From Mobula hypostoma (taxonomy: Eukaryota), in NCBI RefSeq assembly GCF_963921235.1, contig NW_026948139.1:124001-188000 (forward strand): DNA of 64,000 nt, read 5' to 3'. This document shows positions 43,404 through 64,000 of the stretch, piece by piece. The position numbers and the translations under genes are program-made. Within the stretch, counting starts at the first letter, position 1. Every line of letters starts with the position of its first letter. Under the pieces are notes generated by a model that ran no database searches, was not told the origin of the DNA, and saw nothing but the letters and a program-made list of their open reading frames with translations.

Positions 43404-46400
43404 CTGGAGGTAGTGGGGGAGGGGAGGGGGGTTTGTGTAGGTAGGGCCAGGAGGGAGGCATAAGGGGGACAAAGAGGAGGAACGTCAGCTAGTGAGGGTT
43501 ACCAGCTGCTGCCCTATTGCCCATGGCACCTCCCTCCCCCAGAGCATGAAATGCCATTACCTCGCTCAGTCTCCCACAATGACCCGGGACACACTTTCAA
43601 CCTCCAACCCCACCACTTCTAACCCTTTGGCCCCTACACCGCCCCATCTCACTTTCCAGGGTCTCAGAATCCCCTTACACCCACTCCCAGCCACTGGGCC
43701 TACTCTCCACCACCCCGAGCCCACTAGAGTCCACACCAAGGGTCCCACCGTCCTAAACAACCCCTCCCCTCCAAATGCCTTACACAACTACTGACCCTGG
43801 GACACCTAACCTCTTCCTATCCCAGGGTCCCCATCTTAACACGACCCTCTCTGCCTCTCTCCCAACCCTGCAATACATGGACACCTCCTTGCCCACAATC
43901 TGCCGGGAGCCGGTTGCCCGTGATGCTCTCCTCCTTCTCTGGACCGACAGCACCCCCCTCTGTCAAAACACATGCACTGACGTGGTGACCCTCCCAGCCC
44001 AGGGAGAAGGGGAGACTCACACAGCTCCTGGGCGATACTCCGTCGCATCTCGAGCGGTGCAAAGAGCCAGATCTGGTCGAAGACCCGGCTGCCATGCTTG
44101 CTACAGGCCAGCTGGAAGAAGTGACCCTGTGGGGAGAGGAAGTGGGAGGGAGCAAGGATCGAGAGGGGAAGAAAATATAGATTCCAAGGTAAAATTTGGG
44201 GATTTTCAGATTGGTTGAAGAGGGAGAGCGATGTGGTTACAAACAGGACGGGAGTGAAGAGCACAACAATGACATTCAGTGCCCATACTTGCCCCCACCA
44301 CCCACCCACAAACATCTCATCCCTGGTACACCCACTACCCTCGACTCCAGGCCAACAGTCCCCTTCCCCTTGAAGCACTGACTTGTACTGTAGGAGGTAG
44401 CCATTCGGTCCACAGCTTCCTGCTAGTTCACAGTGACCTGGTCTCCTTTCCGGTTCACAGGCTCTCCTGGAATCCTCTGGGGAGAGTCTCTGCCTGCTGC
44501 AGCCCACTCTGACCCAGGTACTGAGTCCGAACCCACAGCCAGTTACACGCCCCCCACCCCCGACACACTCTCCTTCATAACTTACCCTTGTTAACCCTCT
44601 CTGTCCCATTTAATATCTCACTACCCTTTGATATAGGCATCCATTAGCCTCATGAGACCATGGATTTGCACCTTGGAAGGTTTCCAGGGCGTTGCCTGGG
44701 CAAGGTTGTATGGAAGACCGTCAGCTGCCCATGCTGCAAGTCTCCCCTCTCCACGCCACCAATGTTGTCCAAGGGCCGATACAGCTTGGCACTGGTGTCA
44801 TCGCAGAGCACTGTGTGGTTAAGTGCCTTGCTCAAGGACACAACACGCTGCCTCAGCCAAGGCTCAAACTAGTGACCTTCAAATCACTAGACGAACGCCT
44901 TAACCACTTGGCCACTTGCCAACACCCCTTGATAAGACTGATGATAACCCCTCTCACATTGAAAATGAACCTCCTTCCCCCAATCAGGACACTCTGTCCA
45001 ATTTAGTAAACCACCCCCCAGAATCAGGACCCCAGTTAACCCCCACCAATAATACATTTAATAACAGTCCTTTGATTGGACCCTCATTAATCCCATCAGT
45101 CCTATTTAATATTAACCCACCCCCACAGCAAGACTCTTGTTAACCCATCCCATTTAACAACCTATCCCTTTGATCAAAACCTCACTTCCCCTCTGTCCTG
45201 TTTAATATCCACCACTTCCCTAATGGAATCCAACTGAACCCCGTATGTCCTATTTAATAGTAATCCTCCTGCTAAAGGGGTTCCCAACCTTTGCTATGCC
45301 ATCGATGCTTCTGTGGACCCTGGTTGGGAACCCCTGCTCTTGATGGACCCCCATAAGCATCCTGCCCACGCCCAGTTCGTTCTCGTTCTTGTTCATGTTC
45401 GTTCTCTCACAGAGACACACACACGCGCACGCCCTGCTGGCTCCCTTTCTCCTTCGTGTTCGTTCTCTCACAGAGACACACGTACACACACGCACGCCCA
45501 GTTCGTTCTCGTTCGTTCTCTCACAGAGACACACGTACACACACGCACGCCCTGCTGGCTCCCTTGCTCGTTCGTGTTCGTTCTCTCACAGAGACACACA
45601 CACGCACGCCCAGTTCGTTCTCGTTCTTGTGTTTGTTCTCTCACAGAGACACACGCACGCACAGTTCGTTCTCGTTCTTGTTTGTGTTCGTTCTCTCACA
45701 GAGACACACACACACGCACGCCCAGTTCATTCTCGTTCTCGTTCGTGTTCGTTCTCTCACAGAGACAAACGTACACACACGCACGCCCTGCTGGTTCCCT
45801 TTCTTGTTCGTGTTCGTTCTCTCACAAACGTACACACACACGTACACACACGCACGCCCTGCTGGCTCCCTTTCTCGTTCGTGTTCGTTCTCTCACAGAG
45901 ACACACGTACACACGCGCGCCCTGCTGGCTCCCTTTCTCGTTCGTGTTCGTTCTCTCACAGAGACACACGTACACACGCGCGCCCTGCTGGCTCCCTTTC
46001 TCGTTCGTGTTCGTTCTCTCACAGAGACACACGTACACACGCGCGCACGCCCTGCTGGCTCCCTTGCTCACCGTAAACTTGCGGAGCACGGCTTTCTTCT
46101 GCTTTTCGGACACGGTGGTGCTGTCGATGAGGGAGTCGAAGACGTGGCTGCCGGCGGGGTTACAGGCCAGGACGAGGAGGTCATCCACCGGGCTTTCTGC
46201 CATGCTGCGCACTAAGGTGATGGGCTTCTCGAAATTCAGCAGGTGCTGCGCCAGGAGGGTGCCATGGTAGTTCACCAGCTTGAGTCGGGCAACACCAGAC
46301 GGCTGCGGGCGAGAGAGAGGGAGAGTCAGTCCCAACGGTATCACAGGCAGATGATTGCCCTGGGTCAGAGACACACAGGGACTCACTGAGGGTGTGGAAT

Positions 46401-52400: not shown

Positions 52401-55400
52401 TCCTTAAGTCAGGCTAACTGGCCTATCACTTCCCGTCTTTTGCCTCCCTCCCTTTTTAAAGAGTGACCTCGGCAACTGTCCAGTCCTCTGGAAATGAAAT
52501 CTAGTGATTCTTGAAAGATCAGTTCTAATGTCTCCACAATCCCTTCAGCCACCTCTTTCAAATTCAAGCTTAAGCTTATTGTCACTCAACCATATCTACA
52601 TAAACCGCCGAACGCAATAACCTTCCCTGGACCAAGTGCACAACACCGTACGTATAAATCAAACACAAGATAATACTGCCACAAATAAATTAACAAATAA
52701 GGTGCACTTACGTCAGAAGTTAAAAAGTAAACAGTATAACTCCACTGGCTCCTCATACGTGATGAGACCTGGTGGCGGCAGGGAGTTCCGTCGTCTCCCT
52801 GCCTGGGGGAAGAAGCTGTTTCTCATTCTAACAGTCCCAGCGCCTCCTGTCTGATGGTGGAACCCTGGGGTGCAGTCCGTCCGATCTAGCAGACTTGTCT
52901 ATCTTTAGGCCTTTCAGCTTCGCAAGCACCTTCTCCTAAATAAACACTCACTTCCGCCGCCAACACTCTCAAATTCCTGGCACAGGCTGGTACAGCACGA
53001 GAACAGGATCTTCAGCACACCATGTCATGGTGAACTAATTACATTAAAGGGTTAACTAGGCGCTTCTGCCCACACAATGTTCCTATCCATCCATTCCCTG
53101 TCAAAGAACCACACAAATACCTCTATCGTATCTGCCTCCACCACCACCCAAGGCTCACACCGCTTGCCCTGCCCATCTCTTTTGAATAATCCCCCTCTCA
53201 CTTCAAATGCATGCCCTCATATATTAGATATTTCAGCCCGGGATGGGGTTGGGGGGCGGGGGGTGGGAGGAGATACCAACTGTCTACTCTATCTACACCT
53301 CTAATAATCGTATAAATGTCTATCAGGTCTCCCCTCAGCCTTTGACGTTCCAGGGAAAACAACCCACGTTTGTCCAACCTCTCCTTACAGCTCCCGTCCT
53401 CCCGTCCGGTGATTTGCTGCTGTATCCTCTCCACACCCTTCCTGTAAAGGGCCGACCAGACCCCAACACAATCCTCTAGTTGTAGCAGGGGGCGCAGACT
53501 GAAGGTGAGAGGGGACCCGAGGGGCAAGCTTCTCCCCCACAGTGGGTATGTGGAATGAGCTGTCGGAGGTCAACAGCAACACCACTGGCTCCCTCACACA
53601 GAGTGGGTGGGGGCACTGAAGTCAACTGTAACCTCACCCCCCGCTATAAACCGAGATGTGCCTGCACGTGCTGGTGCACAGTGTGTACACGTTGGCACGG
53701 TGCACGCCTGTGGCCATAAACGGAGATGTGCCTGCACGCGCTCGTGCACAGTGTGTACACATTGGCACGGTGCACGCCTGTGGCCATAAACGGAGATGTG
53801 CCTGCACGTGCTGGTGCACAGTGTGTACACGTTGGCACGGTGCACGCCTGTGGCCATAAACCGAGATGTGCCTGCACGTGCTGGTGCACAGTGTGTACAC
53901 GTTGGCACGGTGCACGCCTGTGGCCATAAACGGAGATGTGCCTGCACGCGCTCGTGCACAGTGTGTACACATTGGCACGGTGCATGCCTGTGGCCATAAA
54001 CGGAGATGTGCCTGCACGTGCTGGTGCACAGTGTGTACACGTTGGCACGGTGCACGCCTGTGGCCATAAACCGAGATGTGCCTGCACGCGCTCGTGCACA
54101 GTGTGTACATGTTGGCACGGTGCACGCCTGTGGCCATAAACGGAGACGTGCCTGCACGTGCTCGTGCACAGTGTGTACACGTTGGCACGGTGCACGCCTG
54201 TGTCTATAAACGGAGACGTGCCTGCACGCGCTCGTGCACAGTGTGTACACGTTGGCACGGTGCACGCCTGTGGCCATAAACGGAGACGTGCCTGCACGCG
54301 CTCGTGCACAGTGTGTACACGTTGGCACGGTGCACGCCTGTGGCCATAAACGGAGACGTGCCTGCACGCGCTCGTGCACAGTGTGTACACGTTGGCACAG
54401 TGCACGCCTGTGGCCACCGGCGTGGTCGTGCTCTCCGAGGATGGCAGGACACAGACACCATCAACAGGCCTCACGTGCCTGAGCGCGCGAGTCACATGGA
54501 ACCGTGAGACAGACTACGGCCAGGGCAGGGGAAGCGGAGACGGCGGGAGACGAGGGTTACCTGTTCTGCCCATCCTGGCTTGGCTCCCCGAGGGACTTGA
54601 GAATGGCTGAACACAGCTCCTGAGCCACGTCCGGCAGCCTCCGCCCCAGGACGCGGGCCGCCACCTGCAGCACCGCGCTGGCCGTGGGGTTGGTCAGGAA
54701 CTCTGTGGAGAGATGAGGAGGGTGAGAGAGGCAACCTCTGCAGATCGTCCCTTCCCTCGCTGGCCCCCTCGAACCTCGCAGTGGCGAGGGACCTCACCTG
54801 TCATGTTGTCTGCCAGCAGCTGGGCGTAGTCACGCAGCTCGTCCAGGAACCCTTCCGGGACGCTGAACTCCTTCACCTGTCCGGCACGGAGGTCCAACCC
54901 TCTGTCGAGGTCAAAGCCTGTCGGAGAGGGGCAGAGCAGGTCACAGGCCGTAGGCGTGTATGAACGGACGGACCGTGGGAGCAGGAGGAGGAGGGAGGAC
55001 TGGACTGGAACGTTATCAGGGATCAGATGATTTTATACAGGTCGACCTTCACTAATCCGGCACCATTGGGACCTGAGGAGTGCCCGATTAGTGAAAATGC
55101 CGAATTACAGAAGGATCACATTAAGCATAATCAGTGCCAGATTAACAAAGGAACCGAATTACAGGTAGTCGGATTAGTGAAGGTCGACTGTACTAAATAC
55201 GGAATCAGGAATGAGTGAAACGCTGGATTTAAACCAGGGATTCCAGCAGTTTATATAATGCCTGGGTGTCAGCCACAGGTTGGAATCAAACCCTGAAGTC
55301 CGGGGTGTTCATCTGGAATATTGCATTCCCGGAAGTGGGTTACAGGCTGGGATCTAACCCTGAGGTTTGTGGGGGGTGGTGTTCATTTGGAATACTGGAT

Positions 55401-57428
55401 TCCCGGAAACCCGGTTACAGGTTGGGATCCAATCCTGAGGCTTGGCTTGGGGGGGGCGGGGGTGCAGGAGACAGCGTTCATTTGGAATATTGGATTCCCA
55501 GAAGTGAGTTACAGGCTAGAATCTAATTCAAGGATTCAGGAGGTTTACATATAGAATAAGTGACTCTCAAGAGTGAGTGAAATCCAATCCAGAGGTTCAG
55601 AGTTCAAAGAACATTCACTAACAAAGTACAGCCTGATATTCACTTCCTTACAGACAGCCACAAAACAAGAAATCCGAAAGAACCCATAAATTAAAGACCC
55701 CGACAAACACCCAAGGGGGAGGGGAGGGGGAAAACAAACAATAGACGGTAAATGACCTACAGAGTAAAAGTGAGTCCTCCGACACGAAGCCTGGAGCAGG
55801 AACACAGCCTCAGACTCAGAGCAGAGTAAAGCTAACAGAGCAGCAAGCAGAACCGGTCCTGACACATGGCCATTCCAATCCATCCGGCCCAGCGTTTCTA
55901 TCATCCATACGTCAGTCGTTCCTCGCACCAGGACCCAGGCCACGTAGCATCGATACGCTCAGAACCTGGACAACGCCTCCATGTTCCGGCCCATACCCGA
56001 GCTTTCCAAACCGGCCCAGCGCTTAGATTGACCAAACCTCACTCTGGATTTCCTCCGTCTCCTGCACGCCTCAGTGCCCCCCCCTTCCCACTCCATCTCA
56101 CACCCATGTACCTCAACTCTTGACTCAGCCTCCTCTTCACATGCCTCTTCACCGTTCACAGTGACAGTTTACCATAATGGTTTTTTTTAAAAACAGAAAA
56201 AGCATTGTAAATATTTCTTGCTCTGGGAACCACGAGTAAGTTGTCACCTGAAATGTTTGGAATGAGATCCCCAGTTCTGAGTTACAGGCTGGGATCTAAC
56301 CCAAGGGCTCAGCGTTTTTACGTCGAGGATGACAGATCCCTGTGAGTGAGTTACAGGCTGGTATCCAAGCTACAGTCTCAGGGATTGATAACTGAAATGC
56401 AATATTCTTGGGAGTGGGTTGCAATCCAGAGAGGTTGTGATGTGGAGAACATTTGAGTGGTTGTCCCACCGGATGGTGCGAAAGTGCTAGACTCACCCTT
56501 GGGTGTGTCCTTGTGGGTACTCCTCCGCAGTTTGCTGGCACAGGGCACCACTCCCCCCAGCACCTGCAAGAGATCCCGCACGAAGAGATTGCCCTGCGCG
56601 TCCCTCACGTATTTCAGGAGGTCGCTGCGCACACAACTGCTCAGCTGCCGGACCTGCCCCTCCAGGGTTCTGCCCTCGCCCCCTTCTTCCTCCTCGCCCT
56701 CTGCGTCGTCATCGTCCTCCTCCTCCTCCTCCTCCTCCTCGCCCTGCTCCTGCAGGTTGCTGGCGAGCTGGGTCACCTGCAGGAGGGCCGCCTGCATCAC
56801 GCGGGCCCCACACCGGTGGCTGGCCACGAGCCACAGGTGGGGCTGGAGGGCGGCGAGGAAGCGTCGCAGGGCAGGAACGTCGCACTGGTCCACCAGCCGC
56901 ACCAGGAAGATGCTGCCGTCGGGGTTGGTGCAGACCCGCACCTCCCTGCCCTTGATCTCTGTCAGCACGTTGGAGAGGAACAGCCCTGGCCGGGGAGAGA
57001 GGAGGAAGAGGATGGTTAGCAAGTCCGAGGCCACAGTTCCACCACCCATTCCCTCCTCTCCCCTCCCCAGCCCACCACTCACTCCGTCCTCCCACCCCTC
57101 CCACTATCGGCCTTCAATCCCCCTCTGGCGTCACATTCTGTCCGATTCTCCCCTCCCCCCCAGGTGACACTGACGCCAGTCCCTCACTCTTTTCCTCCTT
57201 GTCCGGAAAGCCGTTCATCAGCGTGGGCATCAGCTGCTGACAGTAGACAAGGACGCCACGGACTGAGTGGTGAGGAGTATCGTTCTCCTCCACCACGCTG
57301 CCCAGTTCCCCGATCGGTCCGCCACCGGAAATCGATCCGCTCCCACGTCGGTTCCTCCGCTGTCTCTGTCGGGTGCGGCGGTCATATTGGTAAGGGCGGC
57401 GGCGATGCTTCGCCCCTGCGGCGGCCAT
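43222..57428 (-). CDS. NOP9: Nucleolar protein 9 (Pumilio-repeat 18S rRNA processing factor), 10 coding exons, 653 aa
   Basis: complement(join(57188-57428,56497-56985,54798-54917,54561-54702,48127-48316,47752-47892,47137-47256,46072-46302,44021-44126,43222-43403)) = 1962 nt. All introns are GT-AG with consistent phases; PUF-like motifs ASHRCG, DRTGSRLLE, HPMANF, NPAGSHV and LACSKHGSRV are present. Confidence 0.95.
44021..44126 (-). CDS. NOP9: NOP9 exon 9
   Basis: GHFFQLACSKHGSRVFDQIWLFAPLEMRRSIAQEL. Confidence 0.96.
45362..46069. repeat. Irregular 50-62-bp minisatellite abutting the NOP9 exon 8 donor
   Basis: Recurrent gttcgttctctcacagagacacacgtacacacgc...ccctgctggctccct. Confidence 0.92.
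46072..46302 (-). CDS. NOP9: NOP9 exon 8
   Basis: PSGVARLKLVNYHGTLLAQHLLNF...LACNPAGSHVFDSL...KKAVLRKFT. Confidence 0.95.
46410..46980. repeat. Degenerate AT-rich minisatellite of about 37 bp (core ggtaaaatattaaac), about 15 copies
   Basis: The core recurs with a regular period. Confidence 0.9.
47137..47256 (-). CDS. NOP9: NOP9 exon 7
   Basis: AFHCDKPVSRKRSCFLLLVSLQTYQVFF (human AFHCAEPSSRQVAC). Confidence 0.95.
47752..47892 (-). CDS. NOP9: NOP9 exon 6
   Basis: FSEICGELLPSVEDVLAEGHLGVV...NHLLE. Confidence 0.95.
48127..48316 (-). CDS. NOP9: NOP9 exon 5
   Basis: SLLEFMKDRTGSRLLEAV...LALHPMANFAVQRAL. Confidence 0.96.
49590..50222 (+). mobile_element. Degenerate Penelope-like 3' end (GIY-YIG C-terminus plus pLTR); a short foldback copy lies at about 49085-49265
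   Basis: KRQDLPVTNQCNSTSHSDIS...LGSLHADCMNID, homologous to 18475-18660. Confidence 0.75.
50270..51175 (+). mobile_element. CR1 remnant with an inserted Penelope pLTR fragment (about 50340-50476)
   Basis: WQMEF..LHFGRTN is interrupted and resumes as VNGRALRSAVEQRDLG. Confidence 0.8.
50438..50473 (-). ncRNA. Minimal hammerhead ribozyme motif (intact copy)
   Basis: Minus strand: AGUC CUGACGA agggucucggccu GAAAC GUC GACU. Confidence 0.7.
51760..52560 (-). mobile_element. CR1 remnant
   Basis: MRGNLIETYRILKGLDRV...TRGHRLKI. Confidence 0.8.
53645..54416. repeat. 70-bp minisatellite, 11 copies, palindrome-rich
   Basis: ataaacggagatgtgcctgcacgtgctggtgcacagtgtgtacacgttggcacggtgcacgcctgtggcc; ORF starts recur every 70 nt. 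Confidence 0.97.
54561..54702 (-). CDS. NOP9: NOP9 exon 4
   Basis: EFLTNPTASAVLQVAARVLGRRLPDVAQELCSAIL (human VFITDKISSFCLQVALQVLHRKLP). Confidence 0.93.
54798..54917 (-). CDS. NOP9: NOP9 exon 3
   Basis: FDLDRGLDLRAGQVKEFSVPEGFLDELRDY (human DFEVPETFLNRLQDL). Confidence 0.92.
55038..55190. mobile_element. Tc1/mariner-pogo type MITE
   Basis: TIRs caggtcgaccttcactaatccg / cggattagtgaaggtcgactg, flanked by TA on both sides. Confidence 0.85.
56497..56985 (-). CDS. NOP9: NOP9 exon 2 (includes the acidic tract)
   Basis: LFLSNVLTEI...VASHRCGARVMQAALLQ...EEEEEEEEDDDD...FVRDLLQVLGG. Confidence 0.96.
57188..57428 (-). CDS. NOP9: NOP9 proximal exon 1
   Basis: aagATGGcc start, basic N-terminus, ...YCQQLMPTLMNGFPDKEEK, phase-1 donor A|gtgagg; a further in-frame ATG lies at 57506. 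Confidence 0.8.
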
Positions 57429-57655
57429 CTTGTTAAGGGCAGCGGCAATGCGTTCCTCCCTGCTGCGGCCATCGCGGTAAGAGGAGACAGGGAGCGCGTG
57501 CGCCATGCCTGACCAGCGTCCATCTTGGGAAGGTAAGACCGGCGTGGACAGAGTGGGAAATGCCCACCTTGGGAAGGCAGCTCCTGTGTGAATGGAGAAG
57601 ACACTATCTTGGTAAAGGATGTTTGGGATTGATAGGATTTTTAAAGTGCTTTGCC
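57420..57655 (-). promoter_or_regulatory. NOP9 proximal promoter copy (YY1 and NRF1-like motifs)
   Basis: gccatctt near 57424, gcgcgtgcgc at 57494-57503, ccatcttg near 57520; CpG-rich. Confidence 0.6.
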
Positions 57656-58455
57656 TGTCCCTCCCCTCGCTCCCTCCTCCAGCTCATCCCTCCCTCACTC
57701 CCTCCTCCAGTTCCCTGTCCGTCCCCTCGCTCCCTCCTCCAGCCCCCCCGTCTCTCACCTTGCTCCCTCCCCACTACCCTCCCCTCACTCCCTCCTCCCT
57801 CCCCTTCTGCTTCCCTGCACTCACTCCAACCCCACTCCTTTCCCAACCTACACCAGCTCACTCTCTCCCACAGCTTCTTCCATAGTCACAGTCATACTTT
57901 ATTCATCCCGGGGGAAATTGGTCCACCAGGCCATCAGACTGCTTAATTCATCAGGCACAGCCGTATTTCTATGTTATATTGACTATCCTGCAGTACGTAA
58001 TATTTAGTATAAATTATTATAGTTGCACCTGCACATTTGAACAGGTAAGGTAAAGATTTTACTCCTCGTGTACATGAAGGATGTAAATAATAGTCAATTC
58101 AATTCCCCTTCACACTCCTCCTCCGGCCCCTTCCACTCTCTCCCCAAACATTCCTCCTTGTTACTCCTCTTCCTCCACCCTCAACTACAACCCTTCACTC
58201 ATCTACCTCTCCCGAATGATTGCCTAATCGCTTTGCCTCTCCTCCCCTCGCAATGCCCCCAGCCCACTCCCTCTCCCTTCCCTCACTCCCCTCAATCCCT
58301 ACCCCCTCACTCCCCCAGCCCTTCTGCCCCCCCTCCCCCATTACCCCGTCGCGCTCCCCTCTCCCCTCACTCGCTCCCTCTCCCCGCCTCCTTCCTTCAC
58401 TCCCATTTTCCCTCCCCCTCTGCCCCCGGGGGCACGGAGGCCGGCTTCTCCTCAC

Positions 58456-58564
58456 CCTTCTCCTCCTTGTCCGGGAAGCCGTACATCACCCTGGGCATCA
58501 GCTGCCGACCGTAGCCGAAGTTGTCGCGGTCCGAGCGGCCGGAAGCCGCGCTCCGCTCCGCCAT
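58456..58564 (-). CDS. NOP9: NOP9 distal (duplicated) alternative exon 1
   Basis: aacATGGcg Kozak; MAERSAASGRSDRDNFGYGRQLMPRVMYGFPDKEEK; phase-1 donor G|gtgagg compatible with exon 2. Confidence 0.6.
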
Positions 58565-58875
58565 GTTGCTCCGTTGCTGTTTCCACGCGCCGGAAGCAGT
58601 CATTCGTCGACCCGGTTGCTCCTTTGCCCCGGCTGGGCGCGACGTCCATCTTGGTAAGTGTGGCTTCAATTCGTCCCCGCCAAGGCGGCCATCTTGGGAA
58701 AGGGATACAAGAAGCGCATGCGCCTTATTTGACTACCTTCCATCTTGCAAAGGTACGACCTCGGTAAATAACATGGAAACGGCCATCTTGCTAAGGTATT
58801 GGTCGGGTGGCTGGGAAAGCGACCATCTTGGTAAAGGATACTGGGATTGTTTGGGTTCGGTTTAAAGGACTTTGC
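58535..58875. promoter_or_regulatory. Distal CpG-island promoter copy, probably bidirectional (ETS, YY1 x5, NRF1)
   Basis: ccggaag at about 58539 and 58590; ccatcttg five times; GCGCATGCGC at 58714-58723. Confidence 0.7.
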
Positions 58876-58959
58876 ACATAACAATAACTCCACCATACAG
58901 TGGACTACTAATGCAGCGTGGGCAACGCTGTGGAGCCAAACTAGTTGGAATGGGAGGAA

Positions 58960-60305
58960 AAAGAGGTTTGGAGTGCATTTGTTGACTGTAGTTAATTTGA
59001 AACTAATCAATAAGCTCCAAGACCTTCGTCTCAGTGTCTTCTAGTGCAATTGGATCCTGGATTTCCTCACGTGTAGACCCCAATCAGTTTGGATTGGCAA
59101 CGACATCTCCTCCACAATCCCCATCAGCACAGGTGCACCATGAAGCTGTGCTCGGGCCCCTGCTCTGCTTGCTTAACACTTCCGACCGCGTGGCCAATCA
59201 CAGCTCCAGTGCCATATTCAAGCTGGCTGACGACACCACTGTCAAAGGGAGTGACAAGTCAGCACTTAGGAGGGAGATTGAAAATCCAGCTGAGTGGTAT
59301 CATAACAACAACCTCTTACTCGATGTCGGCAAGACCAAGGAGCTGATTATTGACTTTGGGAGGAGGAAACCAGAGGTCAATGGTCATCGGAGGAACTTTA
59401 AATTCCCCAATATTATTACTTCGGAGGACCTGTCCTGAGCCCAGCACAAGTGGAATTACAAAGAAAGCCTGGCAGTGTCTCTACTTCCTTAGGAATTTGC
59501 AGAGATTCAGTGTGACATCTAAAACTCTGGCAGACTTCTATAGATGCTACATCACCGCCTGGTGTGGAAACGCAATGTCCTGAATGGAAGATCTAACAAA
59601 AAGTGGTGAATACAGCTCAGTCCATCACGGGTAAAGCCCTCCCAACTATTGAGCACATCTACATGGAGCGTTGTTGCAGGAAAGCAGCATCCATCATCAG
59701 GGACCCCCACCACCCAGGACACGCTCTCCTCTCACTGCTGCCATCGGGAAGAAGGTACAGGATCTCAGGACCCACACCACCAGGTTCAGGAACAGTTATT
59801 ACCCCTCAACCATCAGGAAGGAGGTACAGGAGCCTCAGGACCCACACCACTAGGTTCAGGAACAGTTATTACCCCTCAACCATCAGCAAGAAGGCACTGG
59901 AGCCTCAGGTCCCACACCACAAGGTTCAGGAATACTTATACCCTCTCAAACATAAGGAAGGAATGACAGGAACGTTAGAACCCACACCACCAGGTTCAGA
60001 AACAGTTATTACCATCAGACCTTTGAACCAGAGGGTATAACTTCACTCGCCCCCGTCACTGAACTGTTCCCACAGCCGATGGACTCACTTTCCAGGACTC
60101 TTCATCTCATGTTCTCAATATTTATTGTTTATTTCTTTATTATTATAATGATTTATTCTTGCTCTATTTGCAGAGTTTGTTGTCTTCTGCACTCTGATTC
60201 ATTGATTGTGCTATGGCTATTATTCTAAATGTTTATTGAATATACCACAAGAAAATGATTCTCAGGGCCGTACAAGTACTTAAATAATAAAGTTATTTTG
60301 AATTT
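58960..60305 (+). mobile_element. Rex/Babar-like LINE RT 3' remnant with internal 70-bp tandem duplications
   Basis: LINKLQDL, IFKLADDTTV, KTKELIIDF and PHHPGHALLSLLPSGRRYR motifs. Confidence 0.85.
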
Positions 60306-60959
60306 TGAAATTTCAGTGTCTTCCCCTGCAGCACCGAGCTGCCGAGAGAATGGCTGTCCAACACCTTTTCAATATTTGTTATGGCCAGAGCCCTGGAAAA
60401 TAAGTTAAACAAAGATCTATTATTGATGTGCTTGCAATTAATTTTAAAATATCAGGATTATACTCAGTGTGGTTATTATGTAAGAGCTCTGGAGCCTTTG
60501 GAGAGGGTGTAGAAAAGGGTTACGAGGACTTTGGAGAGGGTTTGGATGATGTTGACCAGGACTTTGGAGAGGGTGTGGAAGGGCCAGGACTTTGCCTGGG
60601 TTGGAGAGTTTAGCTGTGAAGAAAGTTTAGACAAACTTGGATCTTCTTCTCTGGGGCATCAAAAGATCACAGGTGTTGCATCAGTTATTGAGGGAGAGTG
60701 CAGAGCACAGCAGGACGCCAGCATGCAAGAAACTCGACCGGTTTATTGATAACTCTGCTTGTACAGAATGTGAACTCCTCCCATGTGGCAGTGGCTAACA
60801 GGAATATCACTATTAACTACCACTACAACAGGCATACAGTACTGTACAAAAGTCTTAGGCAAACATATATAGATAGGATGCCAAACACCTTTACACAGTA
60901 TTGCAGTAATTTTGTATATTGCATTGTATTGCTGCAGCAAAAATAACAAACTTTATGAT

Positions 60960-61515
60960 ATAGTCATAGTCATACTTTATTGATCCCGAGGGAAATTGGT
61001 TTTCGTTACAGTTGCACCATAAATAATAAATAGTAATAATACCATAAATAGTTAAATAGTAATATATAAATTATGCCAGTAAATAAGTCCAGGACCAGCC
61101 TATTGGCTCAGGGTGCCTGACCCTCCAAGGGAGGAGTTGTAAAGTTTGATGGTCACAGGCAGGAATGACTTCCTATGACGCTCTGTGCTGCATCTCGGTG
61201 GAATGAGTCTCTGGCTGAATGTACTCCTGTGCCCAACCAGTACATTATGTAGTGGATGTGAGACATTGTCCAAGATGGCATGCAACTTGGACAGTATCCT
61301 CTTTTCAAACACCACCATCAGAGAGTCCAGTTCCATCCCCACAACATCACTGGCCTTACGAATGAGTTTGTTGATTCTGTTGGTGTCTGCTACCCTCAGC
61401 CTGCTGCCCCAGCACACAACAGCAAACATGATAGCACCGGCCACCACAGACTCGTAGAACATCCTCAGCATCGTCCGACAGATGTTAAAGGACCTCAATC
61501 TCCTCAGGAAATATA
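60960..61515 (-). mobile_element. Rex1-like LINE 3' fragment with a (GACTAT)n tail
   Basis: Minus ORF LRSFNICRTMLRMFYESVVAGAIMFAVVCWG...HPLH...RKSFLPVTIKLYN. Confidence 0.88.
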
Positions 61516-61894
61516 GAGACGTGAGTGATGATAAACCTGATTCTGATATGTGTCTCTTATGTGGACTGGGAGTGGGAAGGGGGCAGGGAGAGGGGAATCA
61601 TGATTGGGAAATGGAGAATGGAGAGGGGAGGAAGTGGGAAGCACCAGAGGGACATTCTGTAATGATCAATAGGCCAATTGTTTGGAATCAAATGACCTTG
61701 CCTGGTCTCTCAGGTCTGGGTCTTTCTGCACCTGAGCTACCCCCACCCCTGGCACTTTTCTGCCACCTGTCCCACACCCCTCCCACGGTGCCCCACCCTA
61801 GCCATTCCCAACATCCTTTGCTCCCGCCACATTTACAAACTCGCTCTCCGCTTCACGTTGACAAATACACGTTTACACAGTTAACATTTGCACT

Positions 61895-62904
61895 GCTATG
61901 CTGTGAGGTAGGTTATATTAGCAGTTTTCTCTAAAAGCAAACAACAGGAATTCTGCAGATGCTGGAAATTCAAGCAACACAGATAAAAGTTGCTGGTGAA
62001 CGCAGCAGGCCAGGCAGCATCCCCAGGAAGAGGCGCAGTCGACGTTTCAGGCCGAGACCCTGATGAAGTGTCTCGGCCTGAAACGTCGACTGCGCCTCTT
62101 CCTGGGGATGCTGCCTGGCCTGCTGCGTTCACCAGCAACTTTGATGTGTGTTTCTGTAAAAGCAGTGTGTTCTGCTGGTAAGAGTGTTTCGGTTTCAGCT
62201 AAAGATAAGGAGTCACATTGTCCAACTTAGGAATGTGTGTCAGCCAATCAGGATTGTGCGATGTGAGAGAAGGTTCTAGAGGGCTGTGGGGAAGAGTTTT
62301 CTGAAGGACAGTGGTCTGGGTTTTGGGTCTTTTGGAGGGAGCTGTGGAGCAGGGAGCAAGGTTAGATGCCTCAGGATGCCATTGGAAAGAGAGCCCCCGT
62401 TGCAAGAAGTGCTTTGTGCAGATGAATGCCTCAAAGAGGAAGGACCGATACTCCTGAGAGAGAGCCAGTTTGTTTGAGATGGACTGGGAGAGAGGTTCGG
62501 AATGTGTCGGGTGCTTTCAGACAAACTGTGGGTCCAGCGCGTGAGTAAAGAGATACACCCCCGACTACTCCAGTATGATCTTCATTGGACTGGTCCAACA
62601 GAAATGGGCCCTTTTTTTTTTCTGTAACTGTTTGTTAAAGTTGAAAAGTTGGTGAATATATGGTCTTTATAATCTTATGCCAGTGTTCAATCTGTCATTT
62701 CTGAGCTATCGATAACTGTGTATGGGCGGTATTTACACAGCATTCGCTTAAATTGAGGTTCCTGTTTGGTTAAACCCCAAATCATACCGAGCCTAGACAT
62801 ATATAGTTTATGAAAGGTTGCCTTCTTACTGCTGAGTCATGTGGCTGTTAGCAGAGTTCTCCAACAAGCCAGCTCTGTATGCAAGCCCTGGCGAGAGGGT
62901 TACA
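61895..62904 (+). mobile_element. Probable 5' LTR of a Gypsy-type element (left boundary uncertain)
   Basis: Ends in gggttaca, followed 4 nt later by tgggggctcatctgaggt (62909-62926), resembling a tRNA-Pro primer-binding site, and then gag. Confidence 0.6.
61940..62150. mobile_element. Short foldback Penelope pLTR derivative with a hammerhead core at the hairpin apex
   Basis: Arms about 61976-62058 and 62070-62152; TSD tttctStaaaagca at 61926-61939 and 62151-62164. Confidence 0.85.
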
Positions 62905-63047
62905 TTTGTGGGGGCTCATCTGAGGTTGCTGTGTGAATGCTTTTTAACGATTGATTAAGCGATTTATTTGTGTGTTTAAATCAGTGTTTCAACTAGTACT
63001 TGTGAAAGTGAGGTACGTTGTAATTAAGGTACTTTATTGTGGATACC

Positions 63048-64000
63048 ATGGGGATTAAAGTTTGGTGCGATTCAAAAAGAGTATCCATAAGTAATGCTTG
63101 TGTTCTGATCGGGGTGGACGTCCGAGTTCCCAATGAACTGCTACTTAGAGTGCTGAGTTCTGTAAAGGGTTTGGGGACCATTATGCTGATTGAACGGTGT
63201 TTTGACCAATCAGCTGTTAGTGCAGGCTGGCAGTGTCATGACTGAAGTCATGCTGCCCAATAGGATAGGAGCACCTGGAGAGGCGGGGCCATGGGCAGTT
63301 CATATCTCTAGAGAAGCGGGGGGGGGATGCAGCTAAGGGTAAAGACTTTAAAGACAAGTTGTTCTCGTTTCTGCAAAGTGGGGGAAGAGAGTTGTCGGAT
63401 GTGAAAGGTCTAATGGGTCCTTCGGTGGTTGATTTAAATTCTGAGCTGGTTTCAGTAATTACGTCACTGGTTGATAAATACCGAAGTGTACCTGCGGAGA
63501 GCCGAAGTGATTGTAGGCTGGGAGTGCTCTCTGGGGTCAAGCCTACACCCAATGGGGAAGAAGAACGTGAGGCTTAGGCTCAGCAGACACCTTAGTCACT
63601 GGATGAATGGCAGAGCTCAGGTCATATGAAAATACTGAAACTGATAGAGAGTTTAAAGGGACTGGCAGCTGATAAAGGCAGAAAACCCATTGGCCACGTC
63701 AGCTAATTACTTGCAAGCTCTGGAAGATGCGGAAAGTGCAGCCGACCTGATGACGAAGTTCGAGCACACATTCCAGGAGGAAGGAGAGAAGTTGTCTGTC
63801 GACAATTTCAGGTTTGGAGAAGCTGCTGCACTGTTTGTCCCACAAGGGGGGAACTCAGCCGCCTGTGAGAAATCGTTTGAGGGTGGAGCAAGTTGTGAAG
63901 GGCACACGGTCACGTGACCTGGTTGCTCTACATATTTGAATGACCCGCAAGATGCGCCCTCCCCCATCTTTTACCGAGTTACTCAGAGAAGGTAGAGAGG
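63048..64000 (+). pseudogene. Disrupted PNMA-like gag of a Gypsy LTR retrotransposon
   Basis: WCDSKRVSISNACVL.., RLGVLSGVKPTPNGEEE, LIESLKGLAAD and FEHTFQEEGEKLS are spread over several frames with stops. Confidence 0.8.

Follow-up and report, generated by a model that had tools for sequence, protein, structure and literature searches.

The stretch of DNA analysed here (the window) comprises 64,000 nt from Mobula hypostoma (NW_026948139.1, positions 124,001-188,000) and carries the gene of nucleolar protein 9 (NOP9), all features of which are on the minus strand. Positions are those of the window. The 5' part of the gene contains two modules, each made of promoter-like sequence and an exon. 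They are called distal and proximal according to their distance from the first exon encoding the PUF_NOP9 domain. The NOP9 protein of this species is publicly available as P0001 (754 aa, NCBI name "nucleolar protein 9 [Mobula hypostoma]", no isoform label). The relationship between the two modules and their use in the transcript are described below.

The tandem duplication of the NOP9 promoter and exon 1 is real and old. Segments 57750..57100 and 59000..58380 were compared using blastn, which gave a single colinear match (513 columns, 62% identity, E 6e-42). The global MAFFT alignment of both modules agreed with this picture. In the exon part, the alignment is ungapped and the copies are 1,268 nt apart. 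At the exon end, the proximal copy encodes the peptide QLMPTLMNGFPDKEEK and the distal copy QLMPRVMYGFPDKEEK; a GTGAGG donor comes next in either case, leaving one coding base over (phase 1). For the peptide and donor (16 codons, 54 nt), 48/54 positions are identical between copies, versus 46/75 in the adjacent upstream and 13/32 in the adjacent downstream sequence. This local conservation is real because the binomial P is 1e-5 against the 62% background. Thus, the two adjacent NOP9 exons are homologous beyond chance, both over the whole match and at the exon end. The initial annotation, made from the sequence alone, had described two homologous modules about 1.25 kb apart with alignable upstream blocks, exon ends sharing a peptide and a phase-1 GTGAGG donor that fits the common exon, and a better preservation of peptide and donor than of their surroundings. 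All these points were verified, and the donors are functional and in phase. The NRF1-like site that it mentioned, GCGCATGCGC, is exact at 58723..58714 in the distal copy, and its proximal counterpart has one mismatch. The initial annotation had not recognized the upstream blocks as a tandem array of ~43-nt units bearing the box CCAAGATGGCCGC.

To follow splicing, four runs in which about 0.4 of the words of 56400-58900 are present were compared with 54650-59300: X1-X3 (organism A, study P1) and X5 (organism B, study P2). All four consist of assembled contigs rather than reads and were taken as RNA on the basis of canonical splicing. In each of them, one contig covered 58455 to 58584-58589, 57187-57582 and 56496/56755-56984. 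The same contig extended to 54798-54916 in X1-X3. In X5, this last part was on a second contig, the break being located at a skipped repeat (56692-56754). Three joints were observed (58456>57583, 57188>56985 and 56497>54917), all of the GT..AG type. In 4/4 runs, the distal donor at 58456 was joined to an acceptor at 57583, inside the proximal module. This acceptor, ttcacacag/G (57585/57583), is located in sequence aligning with the distal-copy promoter and had been overlooked previously. The distal copy has no AG at the place aligned to it. Given the serial joints in the RNA contigs, the proximal copy is an internal exon, named exon 2 hereafter. Both copies are in all likelihood spliced in series into a single mRNA and are not used as alternative starts.

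These joints were used to weigh the other possible uses of the duplicated exon. According to the initial annotation, the two copies were mutually exclusive first exons with their own promoters, each spliced to the common exon at 56985. Both donors are indeed in phase 1 and fit the common exon, both modules are promoter-like, and the form skipping exon 2 is open (609 aa). This arrangement is nevertheless very improbable. In four runs of two studies the distal donor was joined to 57583, not to 56985, and the public model is serial as well. The distal exon is truly spliced onto the proximal module because k-mer assembly cannot create the joint 58456>57583 from the two proposed isoforms. The predicted joint 58456>56985 was absent from the joint table of all four runs, with the reservation that contigs can miss rare forms. 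The other predicted joint, 57188>56985, was present solely within the serial transcript. Alternative first exons were consequently rejected as the major form, the distal donor being joined to 57583 in every run. Of the initial interpretation, the duplication of promoter and exon 1 and the in-phase, functional donors were retained.

A cassette exon was also considered, in which exon 2 would be skipped in some tissues to give an ancestral-type protein of 609 aa beside the long form. Exon 2 has 396 nt and phases 1-1, so that its skipping keeps the frame. The acceptor of exon 3 has the stronger pyrimidine tract, and position -1 of the exon 2 donor is an A. As announced in the initial annotation, the skipped form is open without stop over 609 aa; its joint was absent in the four runs, which is weak evidence against skipping since contigs drop rare variants, and a single public protein model exists. 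Skipping of exon 2 in some tissues is considered unlikely. The idea of an isoform switch survives only in a weakened form, as an extra start inside exon 2 or as occasional exon 2 skipping. Finally, an assembly artefact (false duplicate segment or uncollapsed haplotype) was rejected and its probability is negligible: the copies are only 62% identical, one mRNA contig spans both of them in runs from two organism labels, and exon 2 was found in DNA runs of two organism labels. The preferred reading remains serial splicing of both copies.

The reading frame of the serial transcript was then examined. Exon 2 is in frame with the distal ATG at 58564. Its length is divisible by three and the two donors share phase 1, so that the frame from this ATG stays open through exon 2 into the PUF exons. 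ATG 58564 is in a strong context (caacATGg, A at -3, G at +4) and ATG 58649 is out of frame, both as stated initially and confirmed by reading of the sequence. Translation would start at 58564 (or 58603), at the first strong AUG. The in-frame ATG 58603 adds 13 residues and is the start of the public 754-aa model. Its use is uncertain because the 5' ends of the contigs (58584-58589) are downstream of it. Translation of the serial transcript from 58603 is identical to P0001 over the first 384 residues. The remainder of P0001, which has the same serial structure, was mapped by tblastn to exons of the window down to 43225. Joints, open frame and identity with P0001 show that a single mRNA contains both copies without loss of the reading frame. 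The serial structure is already in the public annotation but is not described there as a duplication. The gene model being public, the gain is one of interpretation and not of gene discovery. The open frame across exon 2 was also tried as evidence of selection. It was rejected as weak since another frame is mostly open too.

The ancestral organization was determined from the NOP9 loci of Narcine bancroftii (L001) and Rhinoraja longicauda (L002). Both have a single exon 1, with no second copy in intron 1 or elsewhere in these loci. A single exon-1 end of the type Y(F/C)RR...GF..EEEK/G-LF..NVL was found in Mustelus asterias, N. bancroftii, R. longicauda and Chiloscyllium punctatum (the contig of the latter includes 96 nt only upstream of NOP9). 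Since the Mobula copies are ~38% different and both outgroup lineages are without the duplication, it postdates the splits from Narcine and Rhinoraja, yet is not recent. In the alignment, the annotated start codons of Narcine and Rhinoraja fall on the distal ATG 58564, at which position the proximal copy reads GTG (57296..57294). The polarity given in the initial annotation was thus reversed: the distal copy, not the proximal one, keeps the ATG at the ancestral position. From the aligned last box to the start codon, a common layout was observed, consisting of the box, ~45-60 nt, the ETS-like GGATCGATTTCCGGnGGCGGA, 20-55 nt and gcaNcATGGcgg. The ATG in the last box of either outgroup is not in the NOP9 frame, and the frame opened by the ATG one box earlier meets a stop within a few codons. 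Together with the alignment of the starts, this indicates that the first 287 nt of exon 2 (57583..57297) were ancestrally promoter and 5' untranslated region (5'UTR).

Exon 2 is not restricted to the window. Runs of four organism labels contain its words, with values of 1.00 for A, 0.50 for B, 0.33 for J and 0.25 for C; the exon therefore exists in several close relatives. Among the proteins retrieved by protein searches, one of which was swamped by matches to a poly-Glu stretch, there was no other myliobatiform NOP9 and no second protein with the N-terminal insertion of Mobula. Two further features of the outgroup sequences were recorded. Exon 1 of Narcine NOP9 (L001:6001-6260) contains its own 24-nt coding tandem repeat (MGKGKVRK x3); the N-terminal coding region of NOP9 is repeat-prone in more than one ray lineage. 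In P0002 (M. asterias, NOP9-like, partial), residues 1-150 contain FTKMA x2 and PDQDGG, as translation of boxes would give, and a Met with a basic run and the usual LD..T.SYFRR motif appears only at about residue 150. This model is probably over-extended into the promoter/5'UTR.

These observations are best explained by the following scheme. A ~1.27-kb block including exon 1, with its CpG-island promoter and the beginning of intron 1, underwent tandem duplication in the devil-ray lineage. The distal copy, which provides the 5'-most exon in the RNA contigs and the start codon aligned to the outgroup starts, would act as the promoter. The proximal copy is an internal exon, its 3' splice site cacag/G at 57583 being located in the former proximal promoter. 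The mRNA is composed of exon 1 (to 58456), exon 2 (57583..57188, 396 nt) and exon 3 (from 56985). The protein would gain 132 residues, ~96 from the former promoter/5'UTR and ~36 representing the second copy of the exon-1 peptide.

The boxes of the two modules were then analysed. Exact CAAGATGG sites are concentrated in them: 7/8 of those in the 64-kb window are within the two modules, all on the gene strand, for 3.9 expected in the whole window. When mismatches were allowed, 5 distal and 6 proximal units of the type CyTTa-CCAAGATGGCCGC, 40-51 nt apart, were recognized, and a 43-nt period was detected in the array by TRF. A related box, caacATGGCGGa, surrounds the start codon at 58564. Among the six proximal boxes, four (57528, 57477, 57433 and 57390) have at most 2 mismatches to the 13-mer. 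The AAGATGG core is intact at 57528 and 57433, and 57477 keeps GATGGC only. The core AAGATGGC occurs in gene orientation in both modules and in the NOP9 promoters of Narcine and Rhinoraja. Directly upstream of NOP9, Narcine has 14 same-strand units (L001:5153-5866), twelve of them at an exact 36-nt period, and Rhinoraja has ~22 same-strand units at 42-52 nt (L002:4766-5896). No box site was found within 3 kb upstream of NOP9 in the teleost Chanos (L003) or in the gecko Paroedura (L004). The same-strand array looks like a conserved promoter minisatellite of elasmobranchs with a YY1/TISU-like core. Such a repeat-rich promoter would be a plausible substrate for the unequal exchange behind the 1.27-kb duplication.

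The TISU element has the invariable core AAGATGGC, fits the YY1 consensus, is bound by YY1 and is located at +5 to +30 in one orientation; RNA-processing functions are overrepresented among the genes containing it (Elfakess and Dikstein, 2008, PMC2518114). The Mobula boxes share this core and are all in gene orientation. The box at the start codon, ~20-25 nt from the 5' ends of the contigs (58584-58589), is reminiscent of the short 5'UTR setting of TISU. It is the only one near these ends; the upstream boxes are beyond them, the contig ends not being indicative of transcript starts. Unlike TISU, a single element at +5 to +30, the Mobula boxes form a tandem array of 5-6 units extending hundreds of nt upstream. 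They are considered as putative YY1/TISU-like elements.

The Arg-rich stretch of exon 2 contains 12 Arg in 22 residues. It had been presented initially as a plausible nucleolar-targeting signal missing from the distal form. Its reading as an ancestral signal lost by the distal copy was rejected: the outgroup counterpart precedes the start codon, does not encode protein and is not in the NOP9 frame. The stretch is thus the translation of the CGC-rich flanks of the boxes, a novel product of reading the promoter and not an inherited signal. The net charge is +1 for Mobula exon 1 and +14 for the first 91 residues of exon 2, i.e. nearly all of the ~96-residue former non-coding part. In other NOP9 proteins, a basic run immediately follows the Met. 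The new stretch may stand in for this basic N-terminus, which is missing from Mobula exon 1. Literature searches on N-terminal signals of NOP9 and on promoter/first-exon duplication gave nothing specific. The contig from organism B, which has the same joints, differs from the window at 8 sites in exon 2, by 5 synonymous and 3 nonsynonymous changes. Compared with the ~27% of synonymous sites expected under neutrality, this excess (one-sided P 0.04) is only suggestive of coding constraint on exon 2.

The regulatory state of the proximal module was examined from its base composition. The CpG observed/expected ratio is 0.95-1.22 in the distal module (58400-58800), 0.82-1.13 in the proximal module (57200-57600) and 0.32-0.58 between the copies, where the intron is at 0.3-0.4, for a window mean of 0.44. 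Both modules correspond to CpG islands (GC >0.5, CpG observed/expected >0.6, at least 200 nt). The proximal ETS-like element GGATCGATTTCCGGTGGCGGA matches Narcine at 19/21 positions, more than the distal one does, and its surroundings hardly align. In the proximal copy, the ancestral ATG and two box cores are lost, and the NRF1-like site is no longer perfect. Retention of CpG and of the ETS-like element argues for protection from methylation and for constraint at the DNA level. Either an internal start site or a regulatory function within the gene would fit this.

An internal promoter may thus exist in addition to the serial mRNA, with which it is compatible. A second, shorter transcript would start within exon 2. 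Its start site would determine whether the protein begins at ATG 57428, and so contains the Arg-rich stretch but not the distal peptide, or at ATG 57230. Besides a CpG ratio of 0.95-1.13, as high as that of the distal promoter, with sequence depleted to 0.32-0.49 between the copies, the 19/21 match of GGATCGATTTCCGGTGGCGGA (57338..57318) to Narcine and the four well-preserved boxes are in its favour, as is the position of ATG 57428 inside a box and in a strong context. Nevertheless, no contig or joint requires it, the public annotation is a single model, and the ancestral ATG, the NRF1-like site and two box cores are gone. CpG retention may also be due to a factor-protected intragenic element or to Arg codons. 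A live internal promoter is a possibility that is rather doubtful. It is proposed with equal caution that the 287 nt of exonized promoter/5'UTR serve twice, as an Arg-rich, nucleolar-signal-like segment replacing the basic N-terminus and as DNA that stays unmethylated and factor-bound (regulatory element or second start).

The position of the two peptides relative to the protein fold was also determined. PF22493 was detected at residues 194-708 of P0001 (E 1.2e-79, 269 bits for a cut-off of 27). The yeast Nop9 structures 5WTY/5SVD align with residues 161-731 (E ~5e-19), which include the proximal peptide. An AlphaFold model was obtained with 32 orthologues (predicted local distance difference test, pLDDT, 78; predicted template modelling score 0.73). 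In this model the fold begins with a helix at 154-173, and pLDDT is below 50 at residues 1-88, including the distal peptide, and 105-152. This result is biased because the alignment places the orthologues on the proximal copy. With this restriction, the model suggests that the proximal peptide is the first helix of the PUF fold and that the distal peptide is a disordered appendage. Mobula NOP9 resembles the Nop9/NOP9 PUF-like proteins binding 18S pre-rRNA (5WTY, 5SVD, 5WTX; PF22493) by its domain and structural homology. It differs from them by a 132-residue insertion before the fold, with a displaced second first-helix peptide, and is the only such protein among those retrieved.

Several points weigh against the proposed scheme of serial use of both copies. 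Assembled contigs cannot show transcript starts, isoform ratios or rare isoforms, and the RNA nature of the runs is deduced from their canonical splicing. Translation from the distal ATG is itself a prediction. A second frame is open over most of exon 2, and an open frame in GC-rich sequence is unsurprising. The synonymous excess in exon 2 rests on 8 sites, and the AlphaFold model is affected by the orthologues aligned onto the proximal copy. The CpG-island signature and the Narcine-like ETS element of the proximal module argue for a role at the DNA level, possibly as a start site.

Tandem exon duplications whose copies are both retained in the mRNA are a general phenomenon in animals and yield an internal peptide repeat. 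Likewise, the NOP9 exons are adjacent, homologous, of the same phase and both included, and the peptide is repeated. In contrast to typical cases, the NOP9 unit consists of a first exon and its promoter, and the downstream copy needed a new 3' splice site. In addition, 287 nt of former promoter/5'UTR became coding, and the peptide copies are 132 residues apart instead of adjacent. In arrays of the protocadherin or UGT1A type, alternative first exons each have their own promoter. As in these arrays, the promoter and first exon of NOP9 are repeated in tandem ahead of a common exon, and the donor phases are compatible. In NOP9, by contrast, the upstream first exon is spliced to the downstream copy, and no direct joint between it and the common exon was found in the contigs of the four runs. 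The locus behaves as an in-frame tandem exon duplication and not as an alternative-first-exon array.

Table 1. Features of the 5' part of Mobula hypostoma NOP9 (window positions)
Feature	Position	Strand	Remarks
Distal module, promoter and 5'UTR part	58565..58875	-	five boxes, NRF1-like, ETS-like; CpG observed/expected 0.99
Distal boxes, CCAAGATGGCCGC type (starts of 13-mers)	58831, 58791, 58748, 58697, 58654	-	
ETS-like CTTCCGG, distal module	58596..58590	-	
Exon 1, distal copy	58456..58603	-	contig 5' ends 58584-58589; donor AGG/GTGAGG after 58456, phase 1
Intron 1, 872 nt, GT..AG	57584..58455	-	purine-rich, low-complexity
Repeat of 32-nt period, intron 1	57654-57798	-	
First proximal box, intron 1	57612	-	core spoiled to AAGATAG
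Exon 2, first 287 nt, proximal former promoter/5'UTR, now exonic and in frame	57297..57583	-	CpG observed/expected 0.95
Boxes of exon 2	57572, 57528, 57477, 57433, 57390	-	
Decayed NRF1-like site, exon 2	57503..57494	-	1 mismatch
Arg-rich coding stretch, exon 2	57410..57345	-	
ETS-like element GGATCGATTTCCGGTGGCGGA, exon 2	57338..57318	-	
Exon 2, last 109 nt, duplicated former exon-1 coding part	57188..57296	-	peptide QLMPTLMNGFPDKEEK; donor AGA/GTGAGG, phase 1
Intron 2, 202 nt, GT..AG	56986..57187	-	G-rich
Exon 3, first PUF_NOP9-domain exon	56497..56985	-	common exon, "exon 2" of the initial annotation

Other elements were noticed in and around the gene. An AT-rich high-copy repeat (57881-58100) is inserted in the G-rich intron 1, between the modules. 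Its summed contig depth is up to 20,000 and many loose contig ends are found at 57881 and 57922. Just past the exon-1 donor, a short intronic element, TTGGCCTCAGTA, is present in the outgroups (L001:6400-6420; L002:6160-6185). It is partly retained in both Mobula copies as ctggcgtcagtg and ccggcctccgtg (57150-57187 and 58420-58455, minus strand) and may be a conserved splicing or downstream promoter element. A 5'-truncated reverse-transcriptase fragment of a long interspersed element, with a FADDT-type motif on translation, is located at 59020-59700 (plus strand). It abuts the upstream edge of the distal module, and the contig depth summed over it in the RNA-like runs is very high. The search for a divergent partner gene upstream of the distal module, up to 64000, was negative. 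The comparison of the IMPDH-family neighbour of Narcine with window 59000-64000 gave a repeat-derived match only, and this candidate was rejected. Two tandem repeats were found in NOP9 introns, on the minus strand. The first, at 53600-54460, is a long tandem repeat with all three minus-strand frames open and repeated Cys/His-rich pseudo-peptides; it is probably a minisatellite and not a gene. The second, at 45250-46070, is a tandem repeat directly after a coding exon, for which repeated ...CERTNTNEKGSQQG... pseudo-peptides appear in the open reading frame list.

The NOP9 locus of Mobula provides a dated natural example of the fate of a duplicated promoter and first exon, which was absorbed into the transcript and not kept as an alternative start. 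The box minisatellite upstream of NOP9, present in three ray orders and apparently in a shark, constitutes a testable conserved promoter architecture and may explain the proneness of the locus to unequal recombination. In NOP9, an essential factor of ribosome biogenesis, ~96 residues would have been newly made from regulatory DNA. Should the basic stretch prove necessary for nucleolar targeting, the locus would clearly illustrate how a promoter can give rise to new coding sequence.

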